64,000 bases of DNA from Blepharisma stoltei ATCC 30299 (GCA_965603825.1 CBFDEM010000019.1:1-64000), one strand, 5' to 3'; numbered from the stretch's first letter, positions 1 through 60,382 are shown. Notes: generated from the sequence alone by a model not told the origin. A program made the numbers and translations.

Positions 1-2259
1 CTATCTAAAAGATAACATCTAACAACCCTAACACCCTAACATCCTAACACCCTACCTCACCCTAGACACCCTAACACCCTAACACCCTAACACCCTAACA
101 CCCTAACACCCTAACACCCTAACACAACCCTAACACCCTAACACCCTAACACCCTAACACCCTAACACCCTAACACCCTAACACCCTAACACCCTAACAC
201 CCTAACACCCTAACAACCCTAACACCCTAACACCCTAACACCCTAACACCCTAACACCCTAACACCCTAACACCCTAACCACCCTAACACCCACACCTAA
301 CACCCTAACACCCTAACACCCTAACACTAACACCCTAACACCCCTAACACCCCTAACACCCCTAACACCCAACCCCCTAACACCCTAACACCCTAACACC
401 CTAACACCCTAACACCCTAACACCCTAACACCCTAACACCCTAACACCCTAACACCACACCCTAACACCCTAACACCCTAACACCCTAACACCCCAAACA
501 CCCTAACACCCTACACCCTAACACCCAAACACCCTAACACCCTACAACACCCTAACACCCTAACACCCTAACACCCTAACACCCCTAACACCCTAACTAC
601 CCCTAACACCCTAACACCCTAACACCCTAACACCCTAACACCCTAACACCCTAACACCCTAACACCCTAACACCACCTAACACCCTAACACCCTAACACC
701 CTAACACCCTAACACCCTAACACCCTAACACCCTAACACCCTAACACCCTAACACCCTAACACCCTAACACCCTAACACCCTAACACACCCTAACACCCT
801 AACACCCTAACACCCTAACACCCTAACACCCTAACACCCTAACACCCTAACACCCTAACACCCTAACACCCTAACACCCAACACCCTAACACCCTAACAC
901 CCTAACACCCTAACACCCTAACACCCTAACACCCTAACACCCTAACACCCTAACACCCTACACCCTAACACCCTAACACCCTAACACCCTAACAACCCCT
1001 AACACCCTAACACCCTAACACCCTAAACACCCTAACACCCTAACACCCTAACACCCTAACACCCTAACACCCCTAACACCCTAACACCCTAACACCCTAA
1101 CACCCTAACACCCTAACACCCTAACACCCTAACACCCTAAACACCCTAACACCCTAACACCCTAACACCCTAACACCCTAACACCCTAACACCCTAACAC
1201 CCTAACACCCTAACACCCTAACACCCTAACACCCTAACACCCTAACACCCTAACACCCTAACACCCTAACACCCTAACACCCCTAACACCCTAACACCCT
1301 AACACCCTAACACCCTAACACCCTAACACCCTAACACCCTAACACCCTAACACCCTAACACCCTAACACCCTAACACCCTAACACCCTAACACCCTAACA
1401 CCCTAACACCCTAACACCCTAACACCCTAACACCCTAACACCCTAACACCCCTAACACCCTAACACCCTAACACCCTAACACCCTAACACCCTAACACCC
1501 TAACACCCTAACACCCTAACACCCTAACACCCTAACACCCTAACACCCTAACACCCTAAACACCCTAACACCCTAACACCCTAACACCCTAACACCCTAA
1601 CACCCTAACACCCTAACACCCTAACAACCCTAACACCCTAACACCCTAACACCCTAACACCCTAACACACCCTAACACCCTAACACCCTAACACCCTAAC
1701 ACCCTAACACCCTAACACCCTAACACCCTAACACCCTAACACCCTAACACCCTAACACCCTAACACCCTAACACCCTAACACCCTAACACCCTAACACCC
1801 TAACACCCTAACACCCTAACACCCTAACACCCTAACACCCTAACACCCTAACACCCTAACACCCTAACACCCCTAACACCCTAACACCCTAACACCCTAA
1901 CACCCTAACACCCTAACACCCTAACACCCTAACACCCTAACACCCTACACCCTAACACCCTAACACCCTAACACCCTAACACCCTAACACCCTAACACCC
2001 TAACACCCTAACACCCTAACACCCTAACACCCTAACACCCTAACACCCTAACACCCTAACACCCTAACAACCCTAACACCCTAACACCCTAACACCCTAA
2101 CACCCTAACACCCCTAAACACCCTAACACCCTAACACCCTAACACCCTAACACCCTAACACCCTAAACACCCTAACACCCTAACACCCTAACACCCCTAA
2201 CACCCTAACACCCTAACACCCTAACACCCTAAACACCCTAACACCCTAACACCCTAACA
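1..2259 (+). repeat. Telomeric repeat tract (CCCTAACA)n, C-rich strand; chromosome end
   Basis: About 2.25 kb of the 8-mer CCCTAACA with sporadic 1-3 nt variants; this repeat is known from the heterotrichs Blepharisma and Stentor. Confidence 0.97.
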
Positions 2260-2316
2260 TCGAATTTATATGATAATAGGGCGATAGTTTTTTATTTTAT
2301 TATTACTAAATTTTAT

Positions 2317-4493
2317 TTAAATCTGCATTTTTTGGAGTAGTTCAATGTGGTCTCGGCCTAATGTGTGGTCAATAAATTTGATATCTTTTTCAGAAAGTTT
2401 ACATTCATCCTTAGTGAAAACATCACCTTCTTGATATTGTTGCCATAAATTATAAGCCGTATTAAAGTCCTGCAAAGCTGCTTCTTCTTGTCTGAGATTA
2501 TTAAATACCCTAGCTCGATTGCAGAAATGCAAAGGATTGTTGGGCTTAAGTTTGATTGCCTCATCATAGCATTGTATTGCTTCTTGATATCTCTCTAAAA
2601 CACAAAGAGTATTTCCTTTATCATTATAAAGCTTGGCATTGCTTGAATTGATTTTAATTTCTTTATTATGTCTTTCTGCTTCTTCGAGAAAACTACCGAA
2701 TTTATTTAAAGTATATCCTTTCTTCGGGTAAAAATCAGCATTGTTTGGATTGAATTTATTGAGTTTGATTGCTTCGTCATAGCATTTGATTGCTTCTAGA
2801 TAGCTTTTTAAACCATAAAAAGCCTTGTCTTTATTATAGTAAAAATCAGCATTGTATGAATCGAGTTCGATTGCTTCGTCATACCATTCTATTGCTTCTA
2901 GATATCTTTCTAAGCCATAAAATGATTTGCCTTTATTATGGTAATTATAACCATCTTTTGGATCTAGTTTGATTGCTCAGTCATAGCATTCAATTGCTTC
3001 TAGATATCTTTTTAAGCCATAAAAAGCGTTGCCTTTATAAAAGTAAAAATTAGCATAGTTTGGCTTGAGTTTAATGGCTTCATCAAATCATTCAATTGCT
3101 TCTAGATATCTTCTTAAACCAAGCAAAATGTAGCCATTGTTAGAGTAATATATAGCGCTATTTGGATATTTTTTGATTCGTTCGTCATTGCGTTCGATAT
3201 CTTCTAGATGCTCTCCTAAATTGCCCAGACTCATGCCTTTTAGATCTCATTCATCCAGATAGCGAGAATCAAACATTAAATTCTGGCTATTTCATTTTAT
3301 TGATTCAATCTTATTACCAACTCTTCTTAGTCAGTAATTTCTACTATAATAAGTTAAATCAATAATTTTTTTTCGATCTAAATCAAAATAATAATAATAT
3401 TGTCTGAGTAATGGATGAATAGATGAGATGTATATTCCTCCTTTATTATATACACAATACGTTTGAGAATAATAATCGAATTTTGACTTTCTAATTCGTC
3501 TTCAATTTAAGTAACTTCCAATTTCGCTTTCATAGATTCATCCACAGCATTCAATCAAATATAGTCTCTCTGCATTTACCAGGATCTTTTTTTTATCCCA
3601 TTCGAACTCATAAGGAATTGTCGAGAAAGAGTCAATATCAATTGAGTATAATAAAAGATTTCTATTATACCGTCCAGAAATCAAAATATTTCCATTAAAT
3701 ATTATCATGTTGCACTCGGAATCATCTTCTGGCATTGGGGTTAATTGAATTCAGCGATTTTGATCCAAATCGAATCTCATAGATAGAGATGAAGTCATTT
3801 GATTAGATCCTCCAAAGCAATAGACGCTGTTGCTAAAATAGATACATGATGAATTTTGTGAAGGAGTTCCAGATAGCAGCATTTCGACTCCGCCATTCAC
3901 ACCAATTAGCATTGCAATTACAGAAAATTTATCCTTACTAAAACAAAATAGCTTGCCATTTGGAAGTTGAGTTATGCAGGTGACAAAGTCTAATAGTGTT
4001 GTCTGCAATTTTTTTGCTTCTTCAGTTTAAGTGTTATAAATAATTAAATAAGTCCTATTTTCTTCATAATCTCTTGCAACATTATAAAGAGATGTTTTTT
4101 GTTGATAAGCATTAAGATAATCTTGGTAAGCTTGCATTACTAGTGGATCGTGAAGGCTAGAATTGGTCTGAATTGCTGAGCACGTTGCTTTAAAATCTAT
4201 TTCTAATTCTCGATTGTTTGGTCTACTTAGAATCTCAGCTGTTTTATTTCTTAAGTTGTCTATTACGTTTAAAGCGCTTTCTGTTTCATTGTATTTGTTA
4301 TCGAGATCATTAGAAACAGTTATTTGAGAATTAAGCAAGCTGATCTTTTTTTCTAGGCTTTTTTGTATTGGCTTGTTTGCGTTTTCAGACCTTTTGAACT
4401 CTCACAGTTTTCACTAATTATCAAGGAAGTCGAATCTTTAACGTTTGCTGACTCTATAATTGTTTTATTAAGCATTTCAGGAGTATTTTGCAT
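2317..4493 (-). pseudogene. Kelch-like propeller + TPR protein, copy A (7 TPR-like units); disrupted
   Basis: With TGA=W, 4338-2317 is one frame except an in-frame TAA at 4027-4029 (GAA in paralogs); 1-nt deletion near 4390 relative to copy C; ATG at 4493 matches the copy C start (MQNTPE vs MQNSPE). Confidence 0.8.
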
Positions 4494-4538
4494 ATTTATT
4501 TTTCTAAATATGCCTTACATATTTTTGTAAAGACGGAT

Positions 4539-6233
4539 CTATTTAGACTCTCTAACTTTTAATTGAAAATTTAAAACAGCTTTGCATCCAAATAACCAAT
4601 ATTCTTGCCAAAAATTATAAGCCGTATTAAAGTCCTGCAAAGCTGCTTCTTCTTGTCTGAGATTATTAAATACTCTAGCTCGGCTGCAGAAATGCAAAGT
4701 ATTCTTGGGTTGAAGTTTGATTGCCTCATCATAGCATTGTATTGCTTCTTGGAATCTCTCTAAAACATAAAGAGTATTGCCTTTATCATTATAAGCTTGG
4801 GCATTGTATGAATTGAGGTCGATTGCTTTTTCATAGCATTCGATTGCTTCTAGATATCTTTCTAAGCCATAAAAAGCTTTGCCTTTATTATGATAATTAT
4901 AACCATCTTTTGGATCTAGTTTGATTACTCAGTCATAGCATTCGATTGCTTCTAGATATCTTTTTAAGCTATAAAAAGCGTTGCCTTTAAAATAGTAATT
5001 ATTTGAATTATTTGGATCTAGTTTAATTGCTTCGTCATAGCATTCGATTGCTTCTAGATATCTTTCTAAACAATAAAAAGTGATGCCTTTATTATAGTAA
5101 TACCGAGAGCAATCTGGATTGTTTTTGATTAATCCGTCATAGTATATGATTTCTTCTAGGCGTTTTCCTAAATCGTGTAGACTCATGCCTTTTACACTTC
5201 ATTCATCCAGATAATAAGGATCAGGCTTAAAATTCTGGTTATTTCATTTTATTGCTTCAATCTTTTTACCGACTCTTCTAAGTCCGTAATTCCTACTTTC
5301 ATAAGCTAAATCAATAATGGTTTTTTGATCTAAATCAAAATAATAATATTCTCTAACTAATTTAAAAACAGTTGAAATGTATATTCCTCCTTTATTGTAT
5401 GCACAATACACTTGAGAAGATTCTCTATTGATTTTTGATTTTCCTATTCGTCCCCAATTCATGGCACTTCCAATTTCACTTTCATATATTCATCCACTGC
5501 ATTCAATCAAATATACTCTCTCTGCACCTACCAGAATCTTTTTTTTATCCCCTTCAAATCAATAAGGAATTGTCGAAAAAGAGTCAATATCAATTGAGTA
5601 TAATAGAAGATATTTATTATACCGTCCAGAAATCAAAATATTTCCATTAAATATTATCATGTTGCACTTGGAATCAGCTTCTGGCATTGGGGTTAATTTA
5701 ATTCAGCGATTTTGATCCAAATCGAATCTCATAGATAGAGATGAAATCATTTGATTAGATCCTCCAAAGCAATAGACGCTGTTTTTGAAATAGATGCATG
5801 GTGAATCATATGAAGGAGTTCCAGATAGCAGCACTTCGACTCCGCCATTCTCACCAATTAGCATTACAGTTCCAGAAGATCCATCATTACCAAAACAAAA
5901 TAGCTTGCCATTTGGAAGTTCAGTTAAGAAGGTAATTGAAGTTATTAATGTTGTCTGAATTTTTTTGACTTCTTCAGTTTCAGTTTTATAAATATATAAA
6001 TAAGTTCTATCCTCTTCATTATCTCTTACAATATTATAAAGAGATGTTTTTTGTTGATAAGCATTAAGATAATCTTGGTAAGCTTGCATTACTAGTGGAT
6101 CATAAGAATTGTTCTGAATTGCTGAGCAAGTTGTTCTGAAATCTATTTCTGATTCGCGGTTGTTTGGTCTACTCAAAATCTCAGCTGTTTTATTTCTTAA
6201 GGTGTCTGTAACGTTTAAAGCGCTTTCTGCCAT
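4539..6233 (-). CDS. Kelch-like propeller + TPR protein, copy B (5 TPR units; C-terminus replaced)
   Basis: ORF pieces 5703-6233, 5244-5462 and 4929-5186 join in frame through TGA=W; family homology stops at WQEY (~4600) and the frame runs on to TAG at 4539. Confidence 0.75.
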
Positions 6234-6371
6234 TGGGTTATGCAGAGATTATTATAAATAGTTTTTGAGAATTAAGCAAGTTTATCTTTTTTTCTAGGTT
6301 GATTTTTATTGGCTTGCTTACGTTTCAAGCCCTTTTGAACTCTCACTGTTTTCATTTATTATCAATGAAGT

Positions 6372-6415
6372 CCCCCCTCCCCCCTGTGAGAAAAAATTTT
6401 CTTTTTTGCCAAAAA
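6372..6415. mobile_element. ~44-bp insertion with a C-run/GTGAG end; possible transposon terminal-repeat remnant
   Basis: Absent from the aligned position in copies A, C and D; abuts TTAA at 6416-6419; reads CCCCCCTCCCCCCTGTGAGAAAAAA. Confidence 0.4.
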
Positions 6416-6734
6416 TTAACGTTTGCTGACCTGCATTTTATTTTAATGCATATTCACTCAATTAATAAATATATTTATAATAAGTGAGCATCATTGAAGA
6501 GTAAATATGATATTAAAAAATTCACAGAATATAAATACGTAACAAAAATTATTGAAAGTAGAAAATATTAAATATTGCAAGTTACAGCAGTCTCTAGGAA
6601 TTATTAAGTCTCTAATGCCCACCGCTGGCTATAGATACAGGCCGCCCTTATCACCTGACATCAAACCACACCATTTTCTTGCTAGCATCATCGAAAAATG
6701 GTATGCAAGCAATCTCCTAGGATTCACTCGACCA

Positions 6735-6976
6735 TGCATATGCCCTAGAAACATTCCTGACATATGAGCTGTATTAATAAAACCGAGTTAGTAAGACTCC
6801 AGTTCACACCAATCTTTAGCGCTTCTCATTAGAAATGAAACTACAGTGTTCAATAAGTTATTGAAAACCAAGCTCCTCCGCATACGATAAAATAAAAAGT
6901 TAAGTATTTCCCCCCAGCCAATTGAGTTAAGGAAGGCATTTATTTGTCGAATCTTTTGATTTTCTTCGCCTCACAT
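6735..6976 (-). pseudogene. 5' fragment of an SV2-like MFS transporter
   Basis: FLNSIGWG...FLMRSAKDW..LESY..GFINTAHM aligns to the N-terminus of the 8441-9865 gene; frameshifted and truncated. Confidence 0.75.
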
Positions 6977-7192
6977 GTAATTTTAATTATAAATATTCTG
7001 TTTTATATTTTAATGTAATAAAAAATAAATTTCAAAGAAATAATGAATAATTCAGAAGAGCGCTGAGTATTAATTGATATTAATAATTATTATAAAAGCT
7101 TGATTAGCCATTAAAGAAGTGCTAGCAAATAATGATAAATTAGGATTAGTTAGCACAGTAAATTAATTTTTAAATCTAGTTTACTTAGTTTA

Positions 7193-7666
7193 TTAGTTTT
7201 TTATGCATGGGTTTTTTACCAGCAATTCTTCATATAAACTTTCATTGGCAATTGGAGATGCAGATTTTATTATTCGGAATAAAATGTGACCACAGGTAAG
7301 GCCTGTCGTGATTGCCCAAAAAACTCCTATGCTATATGTCATTATTGCAAGCATAAGTAGATATGATAAAGTAACCCAAAGAAAAAATAAACATAAATTT
7401 CCTAAATTAAGCAATATTGTAATGTAATCACTTTTAGGGACTTTTTTTAGATAGACTGCTGTTAATTTAGCGAGGAAATGCACAAGTTCTAATCCAATTG
7501 CTGCCAAAAATAAAGCAGCAATTGTTATTACATATCTAAAATCATTATCAACATTTCAGCTGAATTCATTTTACCTATCAAAGTAAAGCTTGAAGTCATT
7601 ATTATGGAAGGTCATTTGCATAGTCATACTCATATTCATACTTTCGCACAAGCTCATGTCTTCCAT
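7193..7666 (-). CDS. Ctr/SLC31 copper transporter (Ctr-b); 15-nt intron at 7560-7574
   Basis: Met-rich N-terminus MNMSMTMQMTFH, LYFDSW (W=TGA), TM2 MLAIM (MxxxM), TM3 GLTCG (GxxxG); intron GTAAAATGAATTCAG restores the frame. Confidence 0.9.
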
Positions 7667-7749
7667 TTCTCCTATTAATTTTATTCTTTTATACGATTTA
7701 AAATTAACTGGCCATATCTTTGATGATTTATTTAACTATTTTTAAGCTC

Positions 7750-8226
7750 CTAGCAGCATGGGTTTTTTACTACTAGTTCTTGTGACAAACTTTCGTTTGC
7801 TATAGGAGTTTTATGTTCAATCATTCTGAACAAAAAATGACCAAAAGTGATGCCTGTGGTGATGGCGCAGAATACTCCAGTGCTATAAGTCATTATGGCA
7901 AGCATTAAGAGATATGCGAGGGAAACCCACAAGAAATAAATAATGCCATAGCCGAAATTATAGAAAATCAGATTTTGAATTGTTTTTTGGGCTTTTATTT
8001 GATAGACAGTAACCAATTTAAGCAGGAAATGCAGAAATTCTAGTCCCATTGAGACGAGGAATAGAAGAATAATAGCCCCTGCATATTTCGCATCATTGTC
8101 AACGTGCCAACTAAGTGAGATTTACCTGTCAAAAAAGACAACAAAATTATGATCATTATAAAAAGTCATGGCCATGTACATATTCATGTTCATAGTCATA
8201 TTCATATCCATCCCCAGGCTCTCCAT
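7750..8226 (-). CDS. Ctr/SLC31 copper transporter (Ctr-a); 15-nt intron at 8111-8125
   Basis: MDMNMTMNMNMYMAMTFY, FFDSW (W=TGG), MLAIM, GITFG, C-terminal CC; intron GTAAATCTCACTTAG at the same position as in Ctr-b. Confidence 0.9.
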
Positions 8227-9865: not shown

Positions 9866-9889
9866 TATCGTATAATAATAATAATAAAC

Positions 9890-41596: not shown

Positions 41597-42004
41597 TTAA
41601 AAATCAAATGTATTACACAAATACAAGCAATATTCAGCATCCTTTATATAAGTGGGCTCTAGGCATTTTTTAAAGTAGTCCTTGACACTGAATTTCTTGT
41701 CAGGATGTGCTAGTTTCTTTCAGCCGCTATGCTTTTCAGTCAGAATTTTATCAAGTTCATCAAGAGATAGTTGCCTTTCCTTAATTTGCTCAAAAAGATT
41801 GTTTATTTTATCATAATCATAACTGCCTGGGTTCCTATTCCCATTTGGATTCCAATATCTCCATATGCGGGATCTATCATTATTACCATGATATATCTTG
41901 ATATTTCTACCTTTATTTCTTTTCTTTTTCTTCTCCAATAGTTTTTTATCCTTTTGAGTTTTTATTACTTGTGATCTCTTTTGCTTGAAAAATTGATTTT
42001 CCAT
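41597..42004 (-). CDS. Unrecognised small basic protein family, member 1 (135 aa)
   Basis: KQKRSQVIK...PDKKFSVKDY...YLCNTFDF-TAA through TGA=W. Confidence 0.75.
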
Positions 42005-43825: not shown

Positions 43826-44290
43826 TTAGAAATCCATTAGGCAGCATAAAAAAAATGCATGAGTAACATCTTTCATAGAGACGTGCTTTAAATATGTTTT
43901 TGAGTAATTGTAAAAATTGAATTTTTTATAATGAATCATAGGTTTCAAATATTCATACTCTGTATTAAGAATAGCATCAGATTTTTTAAATAATTTTTCG
44001 TTTTCGTGTACGCTTGTATTTACTATAGCAATTTCCTCTTCGTCATCGCCACCAAATGGAGTTTCTAGGCCACTATAAAATAAAGAATAGTAATACCCAT
44101 AATTTCAATTATGATATTTCAGCCTAGCTTTATTTCGCAGAGCAAAGTTGCTAGTAGTTGGAATTCTTTCTTTACGAATTTTAGGTACTGCTTTTTTTTT
44201 GCTTTTTAGCTTTTTGTTTTGCTTGAGTTTTATTATTTCTGATCTTTTCTGCCTAATTGATACTCCATCTTTATATCAACTTATCCGCAT
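43826..44290 (-). CDS. Unrecognised small basic protein family, member 2 (154 aa; absent from the ORF track)
   Basis: Hand translation: RQKRSEIIKLKQNKKLK...KARLKYHNW...KKFNFYNYSKTYLKHVSMKD..AFFLCCLMDF-TAA. Confidence 0.7.
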
Positions 44291-45082
44291 AAAAAACTTT
44301 ATTTGATAAAAGGAATTGAAATAGTTTGCTTGTATCAGCATATATAAGCAATTTATAAAAAGAATTCTATGAATTTATATAATAATTTTTATTTTAAGGA
44401 GATAAAATGGGTTGAAAATGATTTTATTATTAATGGGAGTATTAAAATCTATAAATAGCAATCATTTATCATTAAGATTTAAATATACATAATAGCAATA
44501 AATAATTTTTTTATCATATAATTATTAGCAAATAGCAAATTAAGTTTACAGTGAATCTACGATAAGTCAGTAAAGCCATTAGCCTTTTTTTGTCCGAAAA
44601 AGCAGTCTTCATAAGCATCGGAGCTCAAATGAAGAAAATAGAAGGTTCCCCTATTGGATTTTCTTCCTGAACCAGCTGTCCAAGTTATTAGCTACATAGG
44701 ATAGCGCTATCTAATAGGCTCGCATACTAGGAGCAATTTCACTACCCATTACGCTGGCCCACATATAATAAAATTAATTTTTACTAGAAATACTTCCTTT
44801 AAACAAGAATTCTATAAACCGTCAATTAAATTTAGCATTGATCTATTTCAGTAAATTTTATTTCAATTATAAATGCTCAAGGTGAATAAAGGAGTGATAG
44901 TTCCAGCAATATTGTCTTAATATAGCACCTCAGCGAGATCCAAACTCACAAAAAGACTATTAGTATGCTCAATATAAAATGCGACATGAATAAGGCAGTT
45001 CTTTTATGACTGTTTATGTAAATGATTAATATATAAATTATAGCAGCAATATCGCACTAAGCTTTTTCAAAAAGCAAATTCA

Positions 45083-46163: not shown

Positions 46164-46610
46164 TTAAAAATCTGTTAAAGTGCATAAATGAATTGCATGG
46201 TTAACGTTTTTCATAGCTGAAGAATTCAAATATTGTTTCAAATATTTAGAAAAATCAAATTTTTTGTTAGGAACTATTGATGTTATATTGGAATGCCTTT
46301 TATCAAGAATCTCATAAAATTTTTCAAGAGTTTTATTTTTTTCTTTTATTTCGCCAAGCAATTTTGTGGTTTTCTTTGCATTATAGCCTCCTGTCCTAAT
46401 ATATTGACTCTTACGGTACCCTCAGTCCATGCTGCTATTTCAATCATTATTGTGATAGTTAACTCGCAGCTTATTCCATGGAGTATAGTTTTCATATGCT
46501 CTTTTATACTTACTATTTGAAAAATCTTTCTTTTTTGTACCTTTTGGCTTTTTAATTTTTCTGGTTTTTATTATTTCTGATCTCTTCTGCTTCAATATTG
46601 GCTGCTCCAT
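46164..46610 (-). CDS. Unrecognised small basic protein family, member 4 (148 aa)
   Basis: MEQPILKQKRSEIIK...RVNYHNNDW...PNKKFDFSKYLKQYL...HLCTLTDF; two ORF pieces joined at TGA=W. Confidence 0.78.
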
Positions 46611-47025: not shown

Positions 47026-49185
47026 ATGCAAAATTCTCCTGAAATTCATGATAAAGCTAGTGTCGAGTCAGTAAACGTTAAAGATTCAACTTCCTTTATA
47101 ATAAGTTCGAACAGTGAAAGTTCAAAAGGGCCTGAAAACATAAACAAGATAATGGAAAACAACCTAGAAAAAAACATAAGCTTGCTTAATTCTCAAATAA
47201 CTGTTTCTAATGAACTCAACAATAAACCCAAGGAAACAGAAAGCGCTTTAAAAGTTATAAACATCTTAAGAAATAAAACAGCTGAGATTCTCAGTATACC
47301 AAACAATCGCGAATTAGAAATAGATTTCAGAACAACTTGCTCAGCAATTCAGAACAATTCTAGCCTTCACGATCCACTATTAATGCAAGCTTACCAAGAT
47401 TATCTTAATGCTTATCAACGAAAAGCATCTCTTTATAATATTGCAAGAGATTATGAAGAAAATAGAACTAATTTATATATTTATAACACTGAAACTGAAA
47501 CCGAAGAAGTCAAAACCGTTCAAATTCCACAGCCACTAAGCTCATGCTCCTGCATAACTCAACTTCCAAATGGTAAGTTATTCTGTTTTGGTAGTGATGA
47601 ATGCTCTGGCACAATGCTAATTGATATGAATGGCAGAGCCAAAATGCTGCCATCTGGAGCTCCTCACGGAGTCTCATCAATTATTTATTTCAGCAACAGC
47701 GTCTATTGCTTTGAAGGTGAAAGAAATCTATCTAGCAGATTCGATTTGGATCAAAATCGTTGAATTAAATTATCTCTAATGCCAAAAGCTTATTGCTGGT
47801 GCAATAGTATAATATTTAATAGAAATATTTTGATTTCTGGAAGTAAAAATAGAAATCTTTTGTTATACTCAATTGATATTAACTCTTTCTCCACAATTCC
47901 TTATGAATTTGAAAAGCATAAAATAAAGATCCTGATAAATGCAGAGAGACTATATTTGATTGAATGCTGTGGATGAATCTATGAAAACGAAGTTGGAAGT
48001 TACTTGAATTGGAGACGAATTAGAAAATCATCAATCGATAACAATCTTCAAGTGCATTGAGTATATAATAAAGGAGGAATATGCATCTCAACTACTAACG
48101 GATCGGTTAGAGAATATTATTATTTTAATTTAGATCAAAAAATCATTACTGATAAAGCTTATTATAGTAAGTATTACTTACTTAGAAGGGTAGGTAAAGA
48201 GATTGAATCAATAAAATGAAATAATCAGAATTTTAAGCTTGATCCTTATAATCTGGATGAATGAAGTCTAAAAGGCATGAGTCTAAAAGAATTAGGAAAT
48301 TATTTAGAAGAAATCATATATTATGACAAAAAACTCAAAGAAGATCCAAATTACGCTTTTTTTTATTATAATAAAGGCAACGCTTTTTATTGTTTAGAAA
48401 GATATCTAAAAGCAATCGAATGCTATGACAAAGCAATCAAGCTAGATCCAAATGAAACTCTTTTTTACTTTAATAAAGGCAACGCTTTTTATGGTCTAAA
48501 AAAATATCTAAAAGCAATTGAATTCTATGACAAAGCAATCGAACACAAGCCAAGCAAAGCTAAATATTACTATCATAAAGGCAACGCTTTTTATGGCTTA
48601 GAAAGATATCTAGAAGCGATCGAATGCTATGAAGAAGCAATCAAAGTTAGGCCAAATGATGCTGATTTTTACTGGAAGAAAGGTTCTGCTTTTAATGAAT
48701 TAGGAAGATATCTAAAAGCAATCGAATGCTATGACGAAGCAATTATAATCAATCCAAACAATGCTGATTTTTGCAGGAAGAAAGTATCTGAATTAATTGA
48801 ATTAAGAAAATATCAAGAAGCAGAAATAATCAATAGCGAAACAATAAAGATCAACCCAAACAATGCCAAGTTTTATAATGATAAAGGCAATACTCTTTAT
48901 GTTTTAGAGAGATATCAAGAAGCAATTCAATGCTATGATGAGGCAATCAAACTTAAACCCAACAATCCTTTGCATTTCTGCAATCGAGCTAGGGTATTTG
49001 ATAATCTCAGACAGGAAGAAGCAGCTTTGCAGGACTTTAATACGGCTTATAATTTATGGCAACAATATCAAGAAAGTGCTTTCGTTGGGAATGGATGGGA
49101 ACTATCTGAAAAAGATATCAAATTTATTGACGACATATTAGGCTGAGAGCGCATTGAACTACTCCAAAAATGCAGATTTAAATAA
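47026..49185 (+). CDS. Kelch-like propeller + TPR protein, copy C (full 5' end, 7 TPR-like units)
   Basis: Continuous 719-aa frame with TGA=W; ITQLPNGKLFCFG, VYCF.G, RFDLDQNRWIKL..MP blades, then 34-aa TPRs. Confidence 0.85.
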
Positions 49186-49260
49186 TTTGGTTAGAATAAA
49201 ATAAAAAATTATCTCCCTATCATATAAAATTCGATGATACAAAGCAGGCGGTCTCTAGAA

Positions 49261-49570
49261 TCCTTGTCTCAATGGGACTAGAACTTCTACATTTCCTGCT
49301 TAAATTGATCACTGCCTACCAAATAAAAGCCCAAACAGCAATTCAAAATCTGATTTTCTATAATTTCGGCTATGGCATTATTTATTTTTTGTGGGTTTCC
49401 CTCGCATATCTCTTAAAGCTTGCCATAATGACTTATAGCACTGGAGTATTCTGCACCATCACCACAGGCATCACTTTTGGTTATTTTTTGTTCAGAATGA
49501 TGGCATAAAACTCCTATAGCAAACGAAAGCTTATCTCAAGAACTAGGAGTAAAAAACCCATGCTGCTAGT
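49261..49570 (+). pseudogene. 5'-truncated, frameshifted copy of Ctr-a
   Basis: Matches 8060-7750 inverted; lacks the Met-rich N-terminus; MLAIM changed to KLAIM; frameshift near 49500. Confidence 0.85.
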
Positions 49571-49651
49571 AGCTTAAAAATAGTAAAATAAATCGTCAAA
49601 GATATGGCCAGTTAATTTTAATCGAATAAAAGAATAAAATAAATAGGAGAA

Positions 49652-50125
49652 ATGGAAGATATGAGCTTCTGCGCAATTATGAATATGAGCATGACTATGC
49701 AAATGACATTCCATAATAATGACTTCAAGCTCTACTTTGATAGGTAAAATGAATTCAGCTGAAATGTTGATAATGATTTTAGATATGCAATAACAATTGC
49801 TGCTTTGTTTTTGGCAGCAATTGGATTAGAACTTGTGCGTTTCCTCGCTAAATTATTAGCAGTCTATCTAAAAAAAGTCCCTAAAAGTGCTTACACTACA
49901 ATATTGCTTAATTTAGGAAATGTGAGTTTATTTTTTCTATGGGTTACTTTATCATATCTACTCATGCTTGCAATAATGACATATAGCATAGGAGTTTTTT
50001 GGGCAATCACGACAGGCCTTACCTGTGGCCACATTTTATTCCGAATAATAAAATTTGCATCTCCAATTGCTAATGAAAGTTTATATGAAGAATTGCTGGT
50101 AAAAAATCCATGCATAAAAAACTAA
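49652..50125 (+). CDS. Ctr copper transporter, intact duplicate of Ctr-b; intron at 49744-49758
   Basis: Same length and identical intron as 7193-7666, with scattered substitutions. Confidence 0.88.
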
Positions 50126-50341
50126 TAAATTAAGTAAATTAGATTTAAAAATTAATTTTCTGTGCTAACTAATCCTAATTTGTCATTATTTGCTAGCATT
50201 TCTTTAATGGCTAATCATGATTTTATAATAATTATTAATATCAATTAATACTCAGCGCTCTTCTGAATTATTCATTATTTCTTTGAAAATTATTTTTTAT
50301 TACATTAAAATATAAAACAGAATATTTATAGTTAAAATTAC

Positions 50342-50580
50342 ATGTCAGACAAAGAGAATCAAAAGGTTCAACAAATAAATGTCTTCCTTAACTCAATTGG
50401 CTGGGGGAAATGCTTAACTTTTTATTTTATCGTATGTGGAAGAGCTTGGTTTTCAATAGCTTATTTGAACACTGCAGTTTCATTTCTAATGAGAAGCGCT
50501 AAAGATTGGTGTGATCTGGAGTCTTACTAAGTCGGTTTTATTAATACAGCTCATATGGCAGGAATTTTTCTATGGCATAT
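50342..50580 (+). pseudogene. 5' fragment of an SV2-like MFS transporter (duplicate of 6735-6976)
   Basis: FLNSIGWGK...AWFSIAYLN...LESY-TAA. Confidence 0.75.
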
Positions 50581-51039
50581 ATATGGTCGGGTGAATCTCC
50601 TGAGAGATTGCTTACATATCATTTTTCGATGACGCTAGCAAGAAAATGGTGCGGTGTGACATTGGATGATAAGGGTAACCTATGCCCATAGCCAGCGGTT
50701 GGGTAGCTAGAGAATGTTGTAATTTATTACAGTATTTAATATTTCCTACTTTCAATAATTTTGGTTACATATTTATATTCTGTGAATTTTTCAATATCAT
50801 ATTTACTTTTCAATGATGCTCACTTATTATAACTATATTTATTATTTGGGTGAATATACATTAAAATGAAGTGCAGGTCAGCAAACGTTAAGGAATGGAC
50901 TTTAATTATAATAAATGAAAACAGTTAGAGTTCAAAAGGGTTTGAAAACGTAAGCAAGCCAATAAAAATCAACCTAGAAAAAAAGATAAGCTTGCTTAAT
51001 TCTCAAATAACTATTTATAATAATCTCTGCAATAACCCA

Positions 51040-52812
51040 ATGGCAGAAAGCGCTTTAAACGTTATAGACACCTTAAGAAATAAAATAACTGAGATTCTGA
51101 GTAGACCAAACAATCGCGAATTAGAAATAGATTTCAGAACAACTTGCTCAGCAATTCAGAACAATTCTTATGATCCTCTAGTAATGCAAGCTTACCAAGA
51201 TTATCTCAATGCTTATCGACAAAAAACATCTCTTTATAATGTTGCAAGAGATTATGAAGATTATAAATATTATTTATATATTTATAACACTGAAACTGAA
51301 GAAGTCAAAAAATTGCAGGCTACACCACCGCTATCTTCAGTTAACTACTTAGCTCAACTTCCAAATGGCAAGCTATTTTGTTTTGGTAATGATGGATCTT
51401 CTGGAACTGTAATGCTAATTGGTGAGAATGGCGGAGTCGAAGCGCTGCTATCTTGTACTCCTTCACAAGATTCATCATGTATCTATTTCAGCAACAGCAT
51501 CTATTGCTTTGGAGGATTATTTAATAGATCCACTTGAACTCTATCTAGAAGATTTGATTTAGATCAAAATCGCTGAATTCAATTATCCCCAATGCCAAAA
51601 GCTGATTCCAAGTGCAATAGCATAATATTTAATGGAAATATTTTGATTTCTGGATGGAACAATAGAAATCTTTTGCTATACTCAATTGATATTGACTCTT
51701 TCTCGACAATTCCTTATGAATTCGAAGAGAAGAAATGAAAGATCCTGATAAATGCAGAGAGACTATATTTGATTGAATGCCTTGGGTGAATCTATGAAAG
51801 CGAAATTGGAAGTGCCATGAATTGGGGACGAATAGGAAAATCAAAAATAAATAGCGACTCTTCTCAAGTATATTGTGCATACAATAAAGGAGGAATATAC
51901 ATTTCAACTGTTTTTAACGGAGTTAGAGAATATTATCATTTTGATTTAGATCAAAAAAACATTATTGATTTAGCTTATGAAAGTAAGAATTACGGATTTA
52001 GAAGAGTCGGTAAAAAGATTGAAGCAATAAAATGAAATAACCAGAATTTTAAGCCTGATCCTTATTATCTGGATGAATGAAGTGTAAAAGGCATGAGTCT
52101 ACACGATTTAGGAAAACACCTAGAAGTAATTATATACTATGACGAATTAATCAAAAAATATCCAGATGAATTTATTAATTACTATAATAAAGGCATCACT
52201 TTTTATAGTTTAGAAAGATATCTAGAAGCAATCGAATGCTATAACGAAGCAATCAAACTAGAACCAAATATTTCTAATAATTACTATCAAAAAGGCAACG
52301 CTTTTTATAGTTTAAAAAGATATCTAGAAGCAATCGAATGCTATGACGGAGCAATCAAACTAGATCCAAAATATGGTTATTATTACCATGATAAAGGCAA
52401 AGCTTTTTATGGCTTAGAAAGATATCTAGAAGCAATCGAATGCTATGAAAAAGCAATCGAGTTCGATTCATACAATGTCAAGTGTTATAATGATAAAGGC
52501 AATACTCTTTATGTTTTAGAGAGATATCAAGAAGCAATACAAAGCTATGATGAGGCAATCAAACTTCAGCCCAAGAATCCTTCACATTTCTGCACCCGAG
52601 CTAGGGTATTTAATAATCTCAGACAAGAAGAAGCAGCTTTGCAGGATTTTAATACGGCTTATAATTTATGGCAACAATATCAAGAAAGTGATGCTTTTGC
52701 TGGGAATGAATGGAAACTTTCTGAAGAAGATATCAAATTTATTAACGACATATTAGGCGAGACCGCATTAATTACTCCAAAAAATGCAGATCTAAATAAA
52801 TTTTTAGAGTAA
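51040..52812 (+). CDS. Kelch-like propeller + TPR protein, copy D (5 TPR units)
   Basis: Continuous frame from MAESALNV with TGA=W; last ~17 codons frameshifted relative to paralogs. Confidence 0.8.
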
Positions 52813-52954
52813 AATAAAAAATTATCTCCCAATTTCATATAAAATTCGATGATGTCCGATCTACCTATACCGAGTCATGCTCAAGCCAATAAAGAAAGGG
52901 ATATAAGCTTGCTTAATTTTCAAATACGTTTCTAATTATCTCTGTGATAATCCA

Positions 52955-54720
52955 ATGGCAGAAAGCGCTTTAAACGTTATATACACCTTAAGAAATAAAA
53001 CAGCTGAGATTCTGAGTAGACCAAACAATCGCGAATTAGAGAGAGATTTCAGAACAGCGTGCTCAGCAATTCAGAACAATTCTAGCCTTCACGATCCACT
53101 AGTAATGCAAGCTTACCAAGATTATCTTAATGCTTATCAACAAAAAACATCTCTTTATAATATTGCAAGTGATTATAAAGAAGATAAAACTTATTTATAT
53201 ATTTATAACACTGAAATTAAAACCGTAGAAGTCAAAAACTTACAGAGAAAACTGCGACTAGACCAATGCGTCGGCATAACTCAACTTCCAAATGGCAAAC
53301 TATTTTATTCTGGCTCTGGAATTACAATCCTAATTGGTGTGAATGGCGGAGTCAAAGTGCTGCCACCTGGACCTTTTAGCGAAGATCCCACATGTATCTA
53401 TTTTAACTACAGCGTCTATTGCTTTGGGATCTATAGCTTTGGAAAATTTACTAAAAGTGGTTTACCTCTATCTTATAGATTCGATTTGGATCAAAATCGC
53501 TGAATTAAATTATCCCCAACGCCAAAAGATGGTAGCACGTGAAATAGCATAATATTTAATGGGAGTATTTTGATTTCTGGATGTCAAAATAGAAATCTTT
53601 TCTTATATTCAATTGATATTGACTCTTTCTCGACAATTCCTTATGAGTTCACAGAGTATAGTAGAAAGATCCTGATAAATGCAGAGAGACTATATTTGAT
53701 TGAAAGCCCTGGATGAATCTATGAAAGCGAAATTGGAAGTTACTTAAATTGAAGACGAATTAGGAAATCGATAATCAAAAGCAAGTTTACTCAAGTGTAT
53801 TGTGTATATAATAAAGGAGGAATATACATCTCAACTATTGATCGATCAGCTAGAGAATATTATTATTTTGATTTAGATCAAAAACACCTTATTGATTTAG
53901 CTTATTATAGTAAAAATTTCTGACTTAGTAGAGTTGGTAAAAAGATTAAAGCAATAAATGAAATAGCCAGACTTTTAAGCTTGATCCTTATTATCTGGAT
54001 GAATGAAGTCTAAAAGGCAATAGTTTACAAGATTTAGGAAATAATCTAGAAGTAATTATACCCAGTGTCAAAAAAGCCGATAAATTATCTACCATACTTA
54101 ATTACTGTAATAAAGGCAACGCTTTTTATTGTTTAGAAAGATATCAAGAAGCAATTGAATGCTTTGGCGAAGCAATAAGATATTACCCAAATAATGCTAA
54201 GTTTTACAATAATAAAGGCAACGCTTTTTATAGTTTAAAAAGATATCTAGAAGCAATCGAATGCTATGACAAAGCAATCAAACTCAAACCAGATGAAAGT
54301 CTTTTTTACCATAATAAAGGCAATGTTTATTATGGCTTAGAAAGATATCTAGAAGCAATTGAATGCTATGACAAAGCAATCGAACTCAATCCAAAGAGTG
54401 TCAAGTTTTATTATGATAAAGGCAATACTCTTTATGTTTTAGAGAGATTCCAAGAAGCAATACAATGCTATGATGAGGCAATCAAACTTAAGCCCAATAA
54501 TCCTTTGCATTTCTGCAATCGAGCTAGGGTATTTAATAATCTCAGACAAGAAGAAGCAGCTTTACAGGACTTTAATACGGCTTATAATTTATTGCAACAA
54601 TATCAAGAAAGTGGTGTTTTCGTTGCGGATGAGTGTAAACTTTCTGAAAAAGATATCAAATTTATTAACGACATATTAGGCCGAGACCGTATTGAACTAC
54701 TCCAAAAAATGCAGATTTAA
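52955..54720 (+). pseudogene. Kelch-like propeller + TPR protein, copy E (5 TPR units); one frameshift
   Basis: 1-nt loss in an A run near 53958 (GCAATAAATG vs GCAATAAAATG); may be an assembly error. Confidence 0.7.
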
Positions 54721-54789
54721 ATAAATTTGGTTAGAATAAAATAAAAATTATCTCCCCCAATTTCATATAAAATTCGATACAGTATCATA

Positions 54790-54935
54790 GCCGAATCTGA
54801 AGATAAGGAATACTAGATCCTGCGCAACGAAGGCTCACCAGAAGTCTTCAATAGTTATCAGCTCTTTAAGCTGCAGATCATTGTGGGCTACCACAGGAAG
54901 AAGAAAGGTGTAGAAGGCTTTCGATTCAATAAGAG
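54790..54935 (+). mobile_element. Decayed non-LTR retrotransposon RT fragment
   Basis: Aligns to 57172-57345; encodes ILDPAQ, LFKLQII and KAFDSI across frameshifts. Confidence 0.7.
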
Positions 54936-55031
54936 GACGTACCTATATCAAGCCAATAAAAAAAAGCCCAGAAAAAAAGATAAGCTTGCTTAATTCTCAA
55001 ATAAGTTTCTAATTATCTCTGCAATAATCCA

Positions 55032-56783
55032 ATGGCAGAAAGTGTTTTAAACGTTATAGATACCTTAAGAAATAAAACAGCTGAGATTCTGAGTAGACCA
55101 AACAATCGCGAATTAGAGATAGATTTTAGAACAACTTGCTCAGCAATTCAGACCAATTCTAGCCTTCACGATCCACTAGTAATGCAAGCTTACCAAGATT
55201 ATCTTAATGCTTATCAACAAAAAACATCTCTTTATAATATTGCAAGACTCAATAAATTTAGCTTAATTATTTATAACACTGAAACTGAAATCGAAGAAGT
55301 CAAAACCTTACAGGGACTACGGTGACTAGATATTTGCGTCTGCATAACTCAACTTCCAAATGGCAAGCTATTTTGTTTAGGTAATGATGAAAATTCTGCA
55401 GTTGCAATGCTAATTGGTGTGAATGGCGGAGTCGAAATGCTGCCACTTGGAACTTCGTGCAAAGTCTCATCATGTATCTATTTCAGCAACAGCGTCTATT
55501 GCTTTGGAGGATTTACTAGACCCTATTGATCTCTATCTATTAGATTTGATTTAGATCAAAATCGCTGAATTAAATTATCCCCAATGCCAAAAGCTGATTC
55601 CAAGTGCAATAGCATAATATTTAATCGAAATATTTTGATTTCTGGATGGAACAATAGAAATCTTTTGCTATATTCAATTGATATCGATTCTTTCTCGACA
55701 ATTCCTTATGAGTTCGAAGAGCGTACAAGAAAAATCCTGATAAATGCAGAGAGACTATATTTGATTGAAAGCCCTGGATGAATCTATGAAAGCGAAATTG
55801 GAAGCTACTTAAATTGAAGACGGATTAGAAAATCAATAATCAATAGCGACTCTTCTCAAGTGTATTGTGTATATAATAAAGGGGGTATATACATCTCATC
55901 TATTCATCCATCATTCAGAGAATATTATTATTTTAATTTAGATCAAAAAAACATTATTGATTTAACTTTTTATAATACGAATTACTGCCTTAGAAGAGTC
56001 GGCAAAAAAATTGAATCAATAAAATATAACCAGAATTTAAAGCTTGATCCTTGTTATCTGGATGAATGAAGTCTAAAAGGCATGAGTCTACACAAATTAG
56101 CAAATAATCTAGAAGATATCAAACAATATGATGAATGAATCAAACAAAATCCAAATTGAGCTTGTTTTTACTATAAAAAAGGCAGCACTTTGCGTTGTTT
56201 AAGAAGATATCTAGAAGCAAACGAATGCTTTGACCAAGCAATCAAACTCAATCCAAATGATACTGATTTTTACTTTAATAAAGGCAAAACTTTTTATGGT
56301 TTAAAAAGATATCTAGAAGCAATCGAATGCTATGACAAAGCAATCGAAATCAATCCAAATGAAAGTCTTTTTTACCATAATAAAGGCAAAGCTTTTTATG
56401 GCTTAGAAAGATATCTAGAAGCAATCGAATGCTATGAAAAAGCAATCGACCTCAATTCATACAATGCCCAAGCTTATAATGATAAAGGCAATACTCTTTA
56501 TGTTTTAGAGAGATATCAAGAAGTAATACAAAGCTATGATGAGGCAATCAAACTTCAGCCCAAGAATCCTTTACATTTCTGCACCCGAGCTAGGGTATTT
56601 AATAATCTCAGACAAGAAGAAGCAGCTTTACAGGACTTTAATACGGCTTATAATTTATGGCAAGAATATCAAGAAAGTGTAGTCGTTAGGTATAAATGGG
56701 AACTTTCTGAAAAAGATATCAAATTTATTAACGACGTATTAAGCCGAGACCGTATTGAACTACTTCAAAAAATGCAGATTTAA
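55032..56783 (+). CDS. Kelch-like propeller + TPR protein, copy F (5 TPR units)
   Basis: Continuous 583-aa frame with TGA=W, ending ELLQKMQI-TAA. Confidence 0.85.
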
Positions 56784-57171
56784 ATAAATTTGGTTAGAAT
56801 AAAATAAATAACTAAGAAAGGCCATCTAATTGATTTTAGTTTATTCTTGCACTTAAATACTGACTCTGAATTATATAAGTATAAAAAATGCAAAAATTTA
56901 AAGGTCAAGATCAGGTGAAATCATTTATTGTGGAAAAAGGAATCTAGCTTGTCAATCTAAAAACGAAAAATCTAGATTTTGGAAGCTTTACTAGTTACCA
57001 TTTACTATTTCAAACAAAATATTGATTTTGAAATAGAGATGAAAAAAAATGGAAGGCAAAAAGAACTTTCTATTTAGAATTTTATTCAACAAAGAATAAA
57101 TAAAACGTAAATTAAGTTTAGAGAGTAAACATATATTTAATTTATATTCTTTTATATTACTTCTGTGTCGA

Positions 57172-57345
57172 GCTGAAGAAAAAGAATACTAGATCCTGCT
57201 CAATGAGTGCTCACCAAGAAGTTTTCAATAGCTGGCACGCTCTTTAAACTGCAGATCATTGCGGACTACCACAGGAATCACAGAAAAGAGATGCACTGTG
57301 CTTTTCTTGACTTGCAGAAGGCTTTCAACTCAATAAGCGGTTGTA
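57172..57345 (+). mobile_element. Non-LTR (LINE) reverse transcriptase fragment, in frame with the downstream gene
   Basis: RILDPAQWVLTKKFSIAGTLFKLQIIADYHRNHRKEMHCAFLDLQKAFNSI matches the LINE RT pattern Q-x-GF...S...F(I/L)D(L/F)xKAFD. Confidence 0.75.
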
Positions 57346-57449
57346 TCGATACCGAGTCATGCTATCAAGACAATAAAAAAAGCCTAGAAAGAAAGATAAG
57401 CTTGCTTAATTCTCAATTAGCTATTTCTAATAATCTCTACAATAACCCA

Positions 57450-59306
57450 ATGGCAGAAAGCGCTTTAAACGTTATAGACACCTTAAGAAATAAAACAACA
57501 GAGATTCTGAGTAGACCAAACAATCGCGAATTAGAAATAGATTTCAGAGCAATGTGCTCAGCAATTCAGAACAATTCTAGCCTTCACGATCCACAATTAA
57601 TGCAAGCTTACCAAGATTATCTTAATGCTTATCAGCAAAAAACATCTCTTTATAATATTGCAAGTGATTATGAAGAAGATATAACTTATTTATATATTTA
57701 TAGCACTGAAACTGGAGAAGTCAAAAAATTGCAGACTCCACCACAACTAGACTCATTTACCTACTTAACTCAGCTTCCAAATGGCAAGCTATTTTGTGTT
57801 AGTAATTATGAACTTTCTGGAATTACAATGCTAATTGGTGTGAATGGCGCAGTTGAAATGATGCTATCTGGAACTCTTTTACCAGATTCACCATGCATCT
57901 ATTTCAGCAACAGCGTCTATTGTTTTGGAAGATTAACTAGACCCTATTTATCTCTATCTATTAGATTCGATTTGGATCAAAATCGCTGAATTAAATTATC
58001 CCCAATGCCAAAAGCTGATTTAGCGTGCAATAGCATAATATTTAATGGAAATATTTTGATTTCTGGATGTCAAAATAGAAATCTTTTCTTATATTCAATT
58101 GATATCGACTCTTTCTCCACAATTCCTTATGAGTTCGCAGAGTATAGAAGAAAGATCCTGGTAAATGCAGAGAGACTATATTTGATTGAAAGCCCTGGAT
58201 GAATCTATGAAAGCGAAATTGGAAGCTACTTAAATTGAAGACGAATAGGAAAATCAATAATCAATAGTGAGTCTTCTCAAGTGTATTGTGTATATAATAA
58301 AGGAGGAATATACATCTCAACTATTTATGAATCATCCAGAGAATATTATTATTTTAATTTAGATCAAAAAAACATTATTGATTTAGCTTATTATAGTAGA
58401 AATTACTTACTTAGAAGAGTTGGTAAAAAGATTGAATCAATAAAATATAACCAGAATTATGCCCTTGATCCTCATTATAGGGATGAATGAGACCTAAAAG
58501 GCATGAGTCTACACGAATTAGCAAAAATTCTAGAAGATATCGAGCGCTATGACGAACGAATCAAAGAAGATCCAAATGACGCTTCTCTTTACGATAGCAA
58601 AGGCTACACTTTGGGTAGTTTAAGAAGATATCTAGAAGCAATTGAATGCTTTGATGAAGCAATTAAACTCAATCCTAACGATATTGGTTTTTACTGTGGT
58701 AAAGGCTGCGCTTTATATGGTTTAAAAAGATATCAAGAAGCAATTGAAATCTATGACAAAGCAATCAAACTAAATCCAAATATTACTATTTTTTACTATG
58801 ATAAAGGCAACGCTTTTTATGGTTTAAAAAGGTATCTAGAAGCAATCGAATGCTATGAAGAAGCAATCAAACTCAATCCAAATGAAAGTCTTTTTTACCA
58901 TAATAAAGGCTGCGCCTTTTATGGCTTAAAAAGATATCTAGAAGCAATCGAATGCTATGAAAAAGCAATCGAACTCAATCCAACGAGTGCCACGTTTTAT
59001 AATGATAGCGGCAATGCTCTTTATGTTTTAGAGAGATTGCAAGAAGCAATACAATGCTATGATGAGGCAATCAAATTTGAATCCAATAATCCTTTGCATT
59101 TCTGCAGCCGAGCTAGAGTATTTAATAATATCAGACAAGAAGAAGCAGCTTTACAGGACTTTAATAGGGCTTATAATTTATGGCAAGTATATAATGAAAG
59201 TGTTTTCTTTGAGGATGAATGGAAACTTTCTGAAGAAGATATCAAATTTATTAACGACATATTAGGCCGAGACCGCATTGAACTACTCCAAAAAATGCAG
59301 ATTTAA
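57450..59306 (+). CDS. Kelch-like propeller + TPR protein, copy G (6 TPR units); alternative start at ATG 57291
   Basis: Continuous frame with TGA=W to ELLQKMQI-TAA. Confidence 0.85.
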
Positions 59307-59464: not shown

Positions 59465-59929
59465 TTAAAAATCTGTTAAATGACACAGGTAAAATGCATT
59501 GTAAGGCTCTTTCATGCTAACTCTTTTTAAATATGACTTTGAATACTCATAAAAATTAATTTTTTTGCTGGGAATTGTCTTCTTTATTGAGCTATTATGC
59601 TTATTATCCAAAATTTTGTCCAAGTTTTCAAGAGATTTAATATTTTCCTCTATACTTTTAAGTAATGCAGAAATTTTCTTACCATTATAACTTTTAGATG
59701 TTTTGCCAGGGCCATTATGGTATCATTGAGATCATTCATAGTGGACAGTTTCATGTTCATGATAGTGAAGCCTTGCTGTTCTCCATGGAAGGTATCTATA
59801 ATAGAGGCCTCCTGTTGATTTACGTTTTTCAGGATCTTTTTTGGTTTTGGCCTTTTTGAGTCTTTTTTCTTTAGATTTTATTATACCTGATCTTTTCTTA
59901 GTTTGTTTTCCATTTTTAGAAAACATCAT
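59465..59929 (-). CDS. Unrecognised small basic protein family, member 5 (154 aa)
   Basis: KKRSGIIK...TARLHYH...WYHNGP...PSKKINFYEYSKSYL..SMK...FYLCHLTDF. Confidence 0.78.
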
Positions 59930-59986: not shown

Positions 59987-60382
59987 TTAAAAGTCTAAAG
60001 TTTCACAGAAATAGAGACTATATTGTAAACTCTCCATAATCATAGGATCAAAATTTGTGTGTGCGTATTTTTTAAAATCAAACGTTTTATTAGGAATTTC
60101 GTGGTTTTTATTAATATAGTGCTTTTCTTCTATGATTTTAGCTAGAAATCTGTTTTTTTCTCTCATTTTATCAATATCATTCATAGTTTTCTCATAAAGA
60201 CCTGGCTCATATTCGTTATGATGATGATAGCTCCAACGAACTTTTCTTCTTTGCCAATAACACCCATGACGATTATAACTTTTTCGTTTTTTCGATATTT
60301 TTCGAGACTTGTTTACTTTTTTTAGCTTTTTTTGGCTTTTACAAATTGTTGTGTTTTGAAAGAAAAATACCTTATTATCCAT
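59987..60382 (-). CDS. Unrecognised small basic protein family, member 6 (131 aa)
   Basis: Lys-rich N-terminus, KVRWSYHH, PNKTFDFKKY, LYFCETLDF. Confidence 0.75.
   Translation of the reverse strand: MDNKVFFFQNTTICKSQKKLKKVNKSRKISKKRKSYNRHGCYWQRRKVRWSYHHHNEYEPGLYEKTMNDIDKMREKNRFLAKIIEEKHYINKNHEIPNKTFDFKKYAHTNFDPMIMESLQYSLYFCETLDF

Follow-up and report, generated by a model that had tools for sequence, protein, structure and literature searches.

The window analysed here, a stretch of 64,000 nucleotides from Blepharisma stoltei ATCC 30299 (GCA_965603825.1 CBFDEM010000019.1:1-64000), is a telomere-capped macronuclear contig with seven paralogous genes that combine a Kelch-like propeller with tetratricopeptide repeats (TPRs). 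Five of them (T1–T5) form a tandem array at 47026-59306, all on the plus strand, and two (S1 and S2) lie next to the telomere at 2317-6233, both on the minus strand. The DNA identity among the copies is 83-87%. The telomere consists of CCCTAACA repeats, the unit reported for Blepharisma (PMC9942806). An initial annotation, made from the sequence alone, had given the interval of the array, counted seven copies and listed variable strings after three anchor motifs; all seven copies were found, only T1–T5 lying in that interval, and every string stands in the expected copy. Its reading of UGA as Trp is confirmed by TGA codons at conserved Trp positions of the window copies. Reading frames were taken under table 4, and protein searches used TGA-free pieces or database protein ids.

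An AlphaFold2 model of T4 (P0080), built with a 49-sequence family alignment, has a predicted local distance difference test (pLDDT) score of 89.5 and a predicted template modelling score of 0.84. It places helices at residues 1-65, about 24 beta strands at 67-329, paired helices at 345-548 and a final helix at 560-582. In Foldseek the beta part aligns over approximately 275 columns with Keap1, KLHL3, PfK13 and designed six-bladed Kelch proteins (TMt 0.66-0.77; 0.68-0.72 for Keap1, KLHL3 and PfK13), and the helical part with consensus TPR (CTPR) and OGT TPR structures. The Pfam TPR_1 model scores 151-158 bits in the window (cut-off 27.8, E 1e-45), the repeats have a DNA period of 102 nucleotides, and 155 gap-free tandem TPR units, helix-turn-helix elements of 34 residues, were counted, with 3-11 per gene. 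The Kelch motif passes the Pfam cut-offs in related proteins of the genome (Kelch_1 29.2 and 34.6 bits, cut-off 20.1; Kelch_6 28.7, cut-off 25.3) and reaches E 0.03-0.2 at best in window pieces cut at TGA codons. A feature search of the ESM Atlas returned generic Kelch clusters only, with scores of 0.83 or less. All the proteins share one layout: helices at the N-terminus, a Kelch propeller of six blades, TPRs in varying number and, at the C-terminus, a conserved helix. The propeller and TPRs are those that the initial annotation had proposed. It had also seen no transmembrane segment, which is borne out by a maximum Kyte-Doolittle 19-residue mean of 1.36 or less; a cytosolic location is predicted for the family products.

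A DNA search of the genome assembly (41.46 Mb, 64 contigs) gave at least 45 matches, the window copies among them, from 166 candidates at 71-87% identity. A phmmer search of 1.84 billion representatives with a 179-residue query gave 63 hits; 20/20 of those checked are from B. stoltei, as are 45/45 hits of a word-based search. The copies belong to a large gene family found so far in Blepharisma stoltei only. The combination of Kelch and Blepharisma is absent from the searchable literature, the genome paper, preprint and appendix make no mention of Kelch or TPR families, and the paper and appendix hold no data on these genes.

Complete family members have about 880-920 residues and begin with a Cys/His module followed by some 250 helical residues. 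In this head C6, C11, C19, C29, H32 and H44 are invariant, and the hairpins of its model have pLDDT 78-90. Comparison of the head with B-box, ZZ, UBR-box and TRIM RBCC structures gave weak Foldseek rows (E>1), Pfam had no match for it, a profile search of PDB sequences gave chance coiled-coil rows only, and VIA-align matched the helices at residues 52-110 and nothing else. Residues 1-142 of the full-length proteins have no trace in the window by tblastn. The window copies start at the equivalents of full-length residues ~145 (T1 and S1), ~205-214 (T2 and S2) and ~235 (T3–T5), with T1, from about residue 146, keeping more of the ancestral helical region than any other copy, and five of them share a new start ATG at an identical position. 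In the family tree the window copies form a single clade and so descend from a 5'-truncated founder, in which the Cys/His zinc-type head and some of the helices behind it were already gone.

Elsewhere in the genome the same propeller and preceding helices are fused to a U-box (E 4e-19) or a protein kinase (E 6e-49), with TPRs present or absent. No BTB or BACK domain was found in scans of six kin or in precomputed Pfam lists (37/45 kin with any entry), and no F-box in Pfam scans of window pieces or kin. RING was not found in the kin, some paralogues having a U-box instead, and the 45 listed kin have no NACHT or NB-ARC NTPase, death-fold or HET effector. A TPR-less clade of about 311-325 residues ends just past the last blade and has a shorter, different last B-C loop (L025:386-1354, L028:1497-2474, L030:1126-2085, L032:445-1380).

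Purifying and positive selection

The initial annotation had proposed diversifying selection, to be checked with site models on a codon alignment. The alignment comprised 39 genomic copies (7 from the window and 32 outside it) and 345 codons in T4 numbering. Site models were run in our own implementation, with F3x4 codon frequencies, a fixed maximum-likelihood topology, one branch-scaling factor and naive empirical Bayes posteriors. For all copies, M0 gave a ratio of nonsynonymous to synonymous rates (dN/dS, omega) of 0.70. Neutrality was rejected in the comparison of M1a with M2a (log-likelihood, lnL, -17445.3 vs -17017.3; twice the difference, 2dlnL, 856), with omega2 of 4.8 on 11.8% of codons. 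Copies outside the window alone gave 2dlnL 721. The window clade alone gave 2dlnL 84, with omega0 of 0.06 on 40% of codons and omega2 of 5.7 on 16%; these classes imply constraint and diversification on the branches after the truncation, and selection has gone on within the clade.

Separate trees were used for single segments to limit the effect of recombination. The four propeller segments gave 2dlnL 113-199, and the helical N-terminal segment just 9.4. The start of the TPR region gave 2dlnL 94 with omega2 of 2.9, and the C-terminal 109 residues 2dlnL 30, a signal lying partly within a low-confidence linker. Synonymous changes, too, are locally more frequent at the variable codons, and for this reason a fast-neutral class (rate 5.5-fold, omega 1) was compared with a free omega. 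The fast-neutral class was rejected (lnL -17044.0 vs -17004.4; 2dlnL 79, 1 degree of freedom), and the free-omega dual-rate fit has omega 3.1 on about 11% of codons with a synonymous rate of 1.85-fold. At the variable sites omega therefore exceeds 1 in the site models even with a synonymous rate of their own, as the annotation had expected.

By the Nei-Gojobori method dN/dS is 0.62-0.70 in the scaffold, and in the three patches pointed out in the initial annotation 3.5 among window copies and 1.2 among other copies, the latter near saturation. In the window clade the proportion of nonsynonymous differences (pN) is 0.373 at those sites that the 32 outside copies show to be hypervariable, vs 0.116 at other sites. 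In the youngest pair, S2 and T2, pN is 0.278 at selected sites, against a divergence of 8.2% in the flanking non-genic DNA (P 5e-8), and 0.069 at other sites. The variability of the patches is far beyond chance and recurs on independent branches of the window clade. A neutral pseudogene family was ruled out, omega being near 0.2 at about half of the codons.

The selected residues are not scattered over the predicted structure; they map to one propeller face and to helix A of the TPRs. In the inter-strand loops of the propeller 27 selected residues face side A vs 2 on side B (P 2e-5), and selected sites occur in every second loop, the loops between being conserved. The variable loops are those after the Gly-Gly doublet and after the Trp strand, which in the established strand naming of the Kelch repeat are the B-C and D-A loops, respectively. 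The pocket in which Keap1 takes up its substrates is built from these two sets of loops (PMC12314335). Among the 155 TPR units variation is concentrated at unit positions 1-4, 6, 7, 10, 13 and 14, all in helix A, with helix B nearly constant, and in the first TPRs the site model picks the same helix-A positions. The scaffold is under purifying selection, and positive selection has acted repeatedly on the loops that make up the canonical ligand face of Kelch domains and on helix A in the TPRs.

Turnover and chromosome ends

The family grows and decays through duplication in tandem, the copying of segments into subtelomeres, conversion between neighbouring copies, truncation and the formation of pseudogenes. 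Birth-and-death turnover, suggested in the initial annotation, finds support in the nonsense codon of S1 (a GAA-to-TAA change), in the frameshift of T3 and in the altered C-termini of T1, where the last residues are changed by a 1-nucleotide alteration, T2 and S2. The subtelomeric outpost described there consists of S1, with its stop codon about 57 bp from the telomere, and S2, which belongs to one arm of an inverted segmental duplication of 3.4 kb with its partner at 49261-52680 on the plus strand. Genome-wide, 16/45 matches are no more than 15 kb from a contig end, in end regions that amount to 4.6% of the genome (P 8e-11), and the ends that were checked carry telomeres. Nearest neighbours shift along the gene: S2 is closest to T2 over most of its length and to S1 over codons 150-250, which points to conversion between neighbouring copies.

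The truncation point of T3–T5 is the fusion site of a reverse-transcriptase remnant. The remnant before T5 has just 3 short further matches in the genome, and more than 30 APE-type retrotransposon genes have been reported in the genome preprint. Spread of the family as cargo of a mobile element was ruled out; the remnant accounts for the 5' ends of T3–T5 only.

The common 3' flank of the copies stops at the short motif ATTCGAT (2259-2316, 49190-49236, 52815-52851, 54730-54779). Telomere repeats follow the motif at once in S1, and unrelated DNA follows in T1–T3; the boundary of the duplication unit thus falls at the site of telomere addition. Pieces from the C-terminal part of a Ctr copper transporter accompany the duplication of S2 and T2, at 7750-8049 (minus) and 49272-49508 (plus; Pfam E 1e-8 and 7e-6). 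A short N-terminal fragment, at 6788-6976 and 50342-50530, is similar to the beginning of a gene that lies at 9197-9898 (minus).

Two loci outside the window may be mentioned. At L025 (G000:C18:563700-569300) five fragmentary family pieces in opposed orientations lie within 5 kb, distant from contig ends, and look like a cluster of dead copies. At L043 (G000:C24:1-8800) a more divergent head-plus-propeller gene (4087-5849) stands just upstream of a typical member, 2.4 kb from the telomere, so subtelomeres may hold mixed subfamily arrays.

A candidate recognition repertoire

With moderate confidence, the window genes are regarded as members of a large family, found in B. stoltei only, of cytosolic binders under selection on the propeller face and TPR helix A, which would make up a variable recognition or adaptor repertoire. 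Such a repertoire would probably be driven by conflict and, by analogy with other systems, might serve in non-self recognition. Binding surfaces that change on a fixed scaffold are typical of such a repertoire, and while its function is an inference, the structure and evolution of the family are well supported. Both the propeller face and the groove of the TPRs would bind proteins that change fast, for instance those of microbes, viruses, prey or selfish elements, and the U-box ligase and kinase paralogues with the same propeller would supply the output. The head-less window copies could be stand-alone binders, competitors or TPR-docked adaptors.

Several points weigh against this reading. The Cys/His zinc-type head is missing from 7/7 window copies, S1 and T3 are broken, and the C-termini of three further copies are changed. 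Synonymous divergence at the selected codons is raised about 1.9-fold, and pairwise ratios of nonsynonymous to synonymous differences (pN/pS) there, taken with the local synonymous rate, are 0.8-1.65 and below 1 in two pairs; the claim of omega above 1 rests, therefore, on the site models and not on pairwise counts. Recombination within segments and multi-nucleotide mutations can inflate such site tests, and our own site models are no substitute for recombination-aware published tools.

A role in endogenous biology and not in defence is rather unlikely; the proteins might then, for example, be adaptors of self proteins that evolve fast, at work in mating or conjugation, in cortical patterning or in the control of germline-derived mobile elements during genome editing. 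Kelch and TPR are general protein-interaction modules, fusions to U-box and kinase fit ordinary signalling, and in Blepharisma mating-type signalling is elaborate and DNA is eliminated on a massive scale (PMC9942806, PMC9942856). However, nothing ties the family to mating, patterning or genome editing, and subtelomeric amplification, fast turnover and strong positive selection on the binding faces are more typical of conflict-driven families. This role would overlap with that of a recognition repertoire if the partners were selfish elements.

It is unlikely that the window clade consists of decaying head-less relics, idle today, with a selection signature inherited or gene-converted from full-length ancestors. 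The untraceable residues 1-142, the lesions of S1 and T3, the changed C-termini, the retrotransposon origin of the 5' ends of T4 and T5 and the mosaic nearest neighbours, which indicate conversion, would all fit such decay. Yet the window clade alone has both the strongly constrained and the diversifying codon class, the new ATG is kept at one position in five copies, the nearest neighbours are almost always other window copies and not full-length kin, and the frames of T4 and T5 have stayed open for about 580-620 codons at 13-17% DNA divergence. The patches might also be unconstrained loops in which micro gene conversion or error-prone repair locally brings in more changes, with no adaptive diversification. 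This would agree with the roughly doubled synonymous divergence and the low pairwise pN/pS but is very unlikely, because the fast-neutral class is rejected, two independent clades have their variation at the same codons, and the variable codons are confined to one face, the other having conserved loops.

Several known systems offer comparisons. The six-bladed Kelch propeller (TMt about 0.7) is shared with Keap1 and other KLHL proteins, the BTB-Kelch adaptors of Cullin-3, and the variable residues lie in the loops that form the Keap1 pocket. The Blepharisma proteins differ in the absence of BTB and BACK, in the TPR array after the propeller and in an identity of only about 11%, and the family is large, lineage-specific and positively selected. 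Adaptive evolution of the substrate-binding domain has reportedly accompanied the expansion of plant F-box-Kelch and nematode F-box and MATH-BTB adaptors, for which the targeting of foreign proteins is a proposed role. Lineage-specific amplification, birth-and-death evolution and positive selection limited to the binding surface are common to these families and to the present one, but the latter has no F-box or BTB, its ligase domain (U-box) is found in some paralogues only, and the window copies are without any effector domain.

TRIM proteins consist of RING, B-box, coiled coil and a variable C-terminal domain, and TRIM5alpha has selected SPRY loops. The full-length Blepharisma kin likewise have a Cys/His head, a long helical region and a variable recognition domain; unlike TRIMs, they lack RING and have Kelch plus TPR in place of SPRY or NHL, and the window copies are head-less. 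Fungal STAND/NLR-like proteins are said to carry highly similar WD40, ANK or TPR repeats with hypervariable binding positions. The variable TPR number, the near-constant helix B with its hypervariable helix A, and the evidence of conversion and unequal exchange are similar in Blepharisma, but the nucleotide-binding, death-fold and HET modules are absent from the listed kin. Subtelomeric contingency families include the surface genes of yeast, Plasmodium and trypanosomes. Enrichment at telomeres, duplication between a chromosome end and an internal array, and many pseudogenes are shared with these families, whereas the Blepharisma products are predicted to be cytosolic and not surface antigens, and the chromosomes are somatic, macronuclear ones.

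Ciliates are free-living predators with many symbionts and transposon-rich germlines, and to our knowledge very little is known of how they detect intracellular bacteria, viruses, molecules of their prey or mobile elements of their own. With its known interaction folds, strong and spatially coherent positive selection and ligase- or kinase-fused paralogues, the family offers concrete candidates for such recognition. A bolder proposal, possible but doubtful, is that the germline of Blepharisma encodes a system for variable recognition inside the cell, with about a hundred or more propeller/TPR sensors that are diversified on their two binding surfaces, amplified at chromosome ends and connected by way of paralogues to U-box ubiquitin ligase and kinase outputs. 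If so, an innate-immunity or genome-defence repertoire would have arisen in a ciliate apart from NLRs and TRIMs, with the head-less window clade as decoys or modulators. The family also illustrates how the somatic chromosome ends of a ciliate can be nurseries for fast-evolving genes. Functional tests are feasible since B. stoltei is culturable and its genome and a developmental RNA-seq series are published.

Coordinates and neighbouring genes

Table 1. Positions of the family copies, their parts and associated elements in the window.
Feature	Position	Strand	Details
Macronuclear telomere	1..2260	.	CCCTAACA repeats; read directly in the sequence
S1, probable pseudogene	2317..4413	-	In-frame TAA at 4027-4029; more frame changes upstream
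Database model of S1 (P0096)	2317-3912	-	
S2 (model P0085)	4539..6233	-	564 residues; unrelated residues replace last TPR cap and C-terminal helix
Subtelomeric arm of 3.4-kb inverted segmental duplication	4599..8060	-	S2, transporter N-terminal fragment and Ctr copper-transporter fragment; blastn 91-92% identity
T1 (model P0081)	47026..49185	+	719 residues; 6 TPR units
T2 (model P0084)	51040..52812	+	590 residues; C-terminal 15 residues frameshifted; sister to S2
T3, broken	52955..54720	+	1-nucleotide deletion in A-run near 53957, in propeller-TPR linker
Related reverse-transcriptase remnant ahead of T4	54797-54984		Fused in frame; DNA match to remnant at 57207-57449
T4 (model P0080), intact	55032..56783	+	583 residues; numbering reference, nucleotide = 55032 + 3(n-1)
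T4 helical N-terminal region	55032-55226	+	
T4 Kelch propeller	55230-56018	+	
Selected B-C loop, T4 residues 161-165	55512..55526	+	Just past Gly-Gly doublet; posterior >0.99 at 161 and 163-165; 162 not selected
Patch 'after MP', T4 residues 187-192	55590..55607	+	D-A loop after Trp strand
Patch 'after IPYEF', T4 residues 229-233	55716..55730	+	D-A loop
Patch 'after GGIYIS', T4 residues 290-295	55899..55916	+	B-C loop
T4 TPRs	56064-56675	+	
T4 C-terminal helix	56709-56777	+	
Non-LTR reverse-transcriptase remnant	57207..57449	+	In-frame fusion to 5' end of T5; RVT_1 E 0.009, below cut-off
T5, intact from conserved start motif	57450..59306	+	6 TPR units

The database model of T5 (P0082) begins further upstream than the conserved start motif, at 57291, within the reverse-transcriptase remnant.

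The tandem array is bracketed by five small, very basic proteins of 131-171 residues with a common C-terminal motif (41597-42004, 43826-44341, 46164-46610, 59465-59929 and 59987-60382, all on the minus strand), for which Pfam gave no significant match. The gene at 42466-43686 (plus) encodes a Cys-rich protein of 406 residues that may be secreted. Its N-terminus is hydrophobic, and the pattern of its Cys residues is weakly Dickkopf_N-like (E 0.002, below cut-off).

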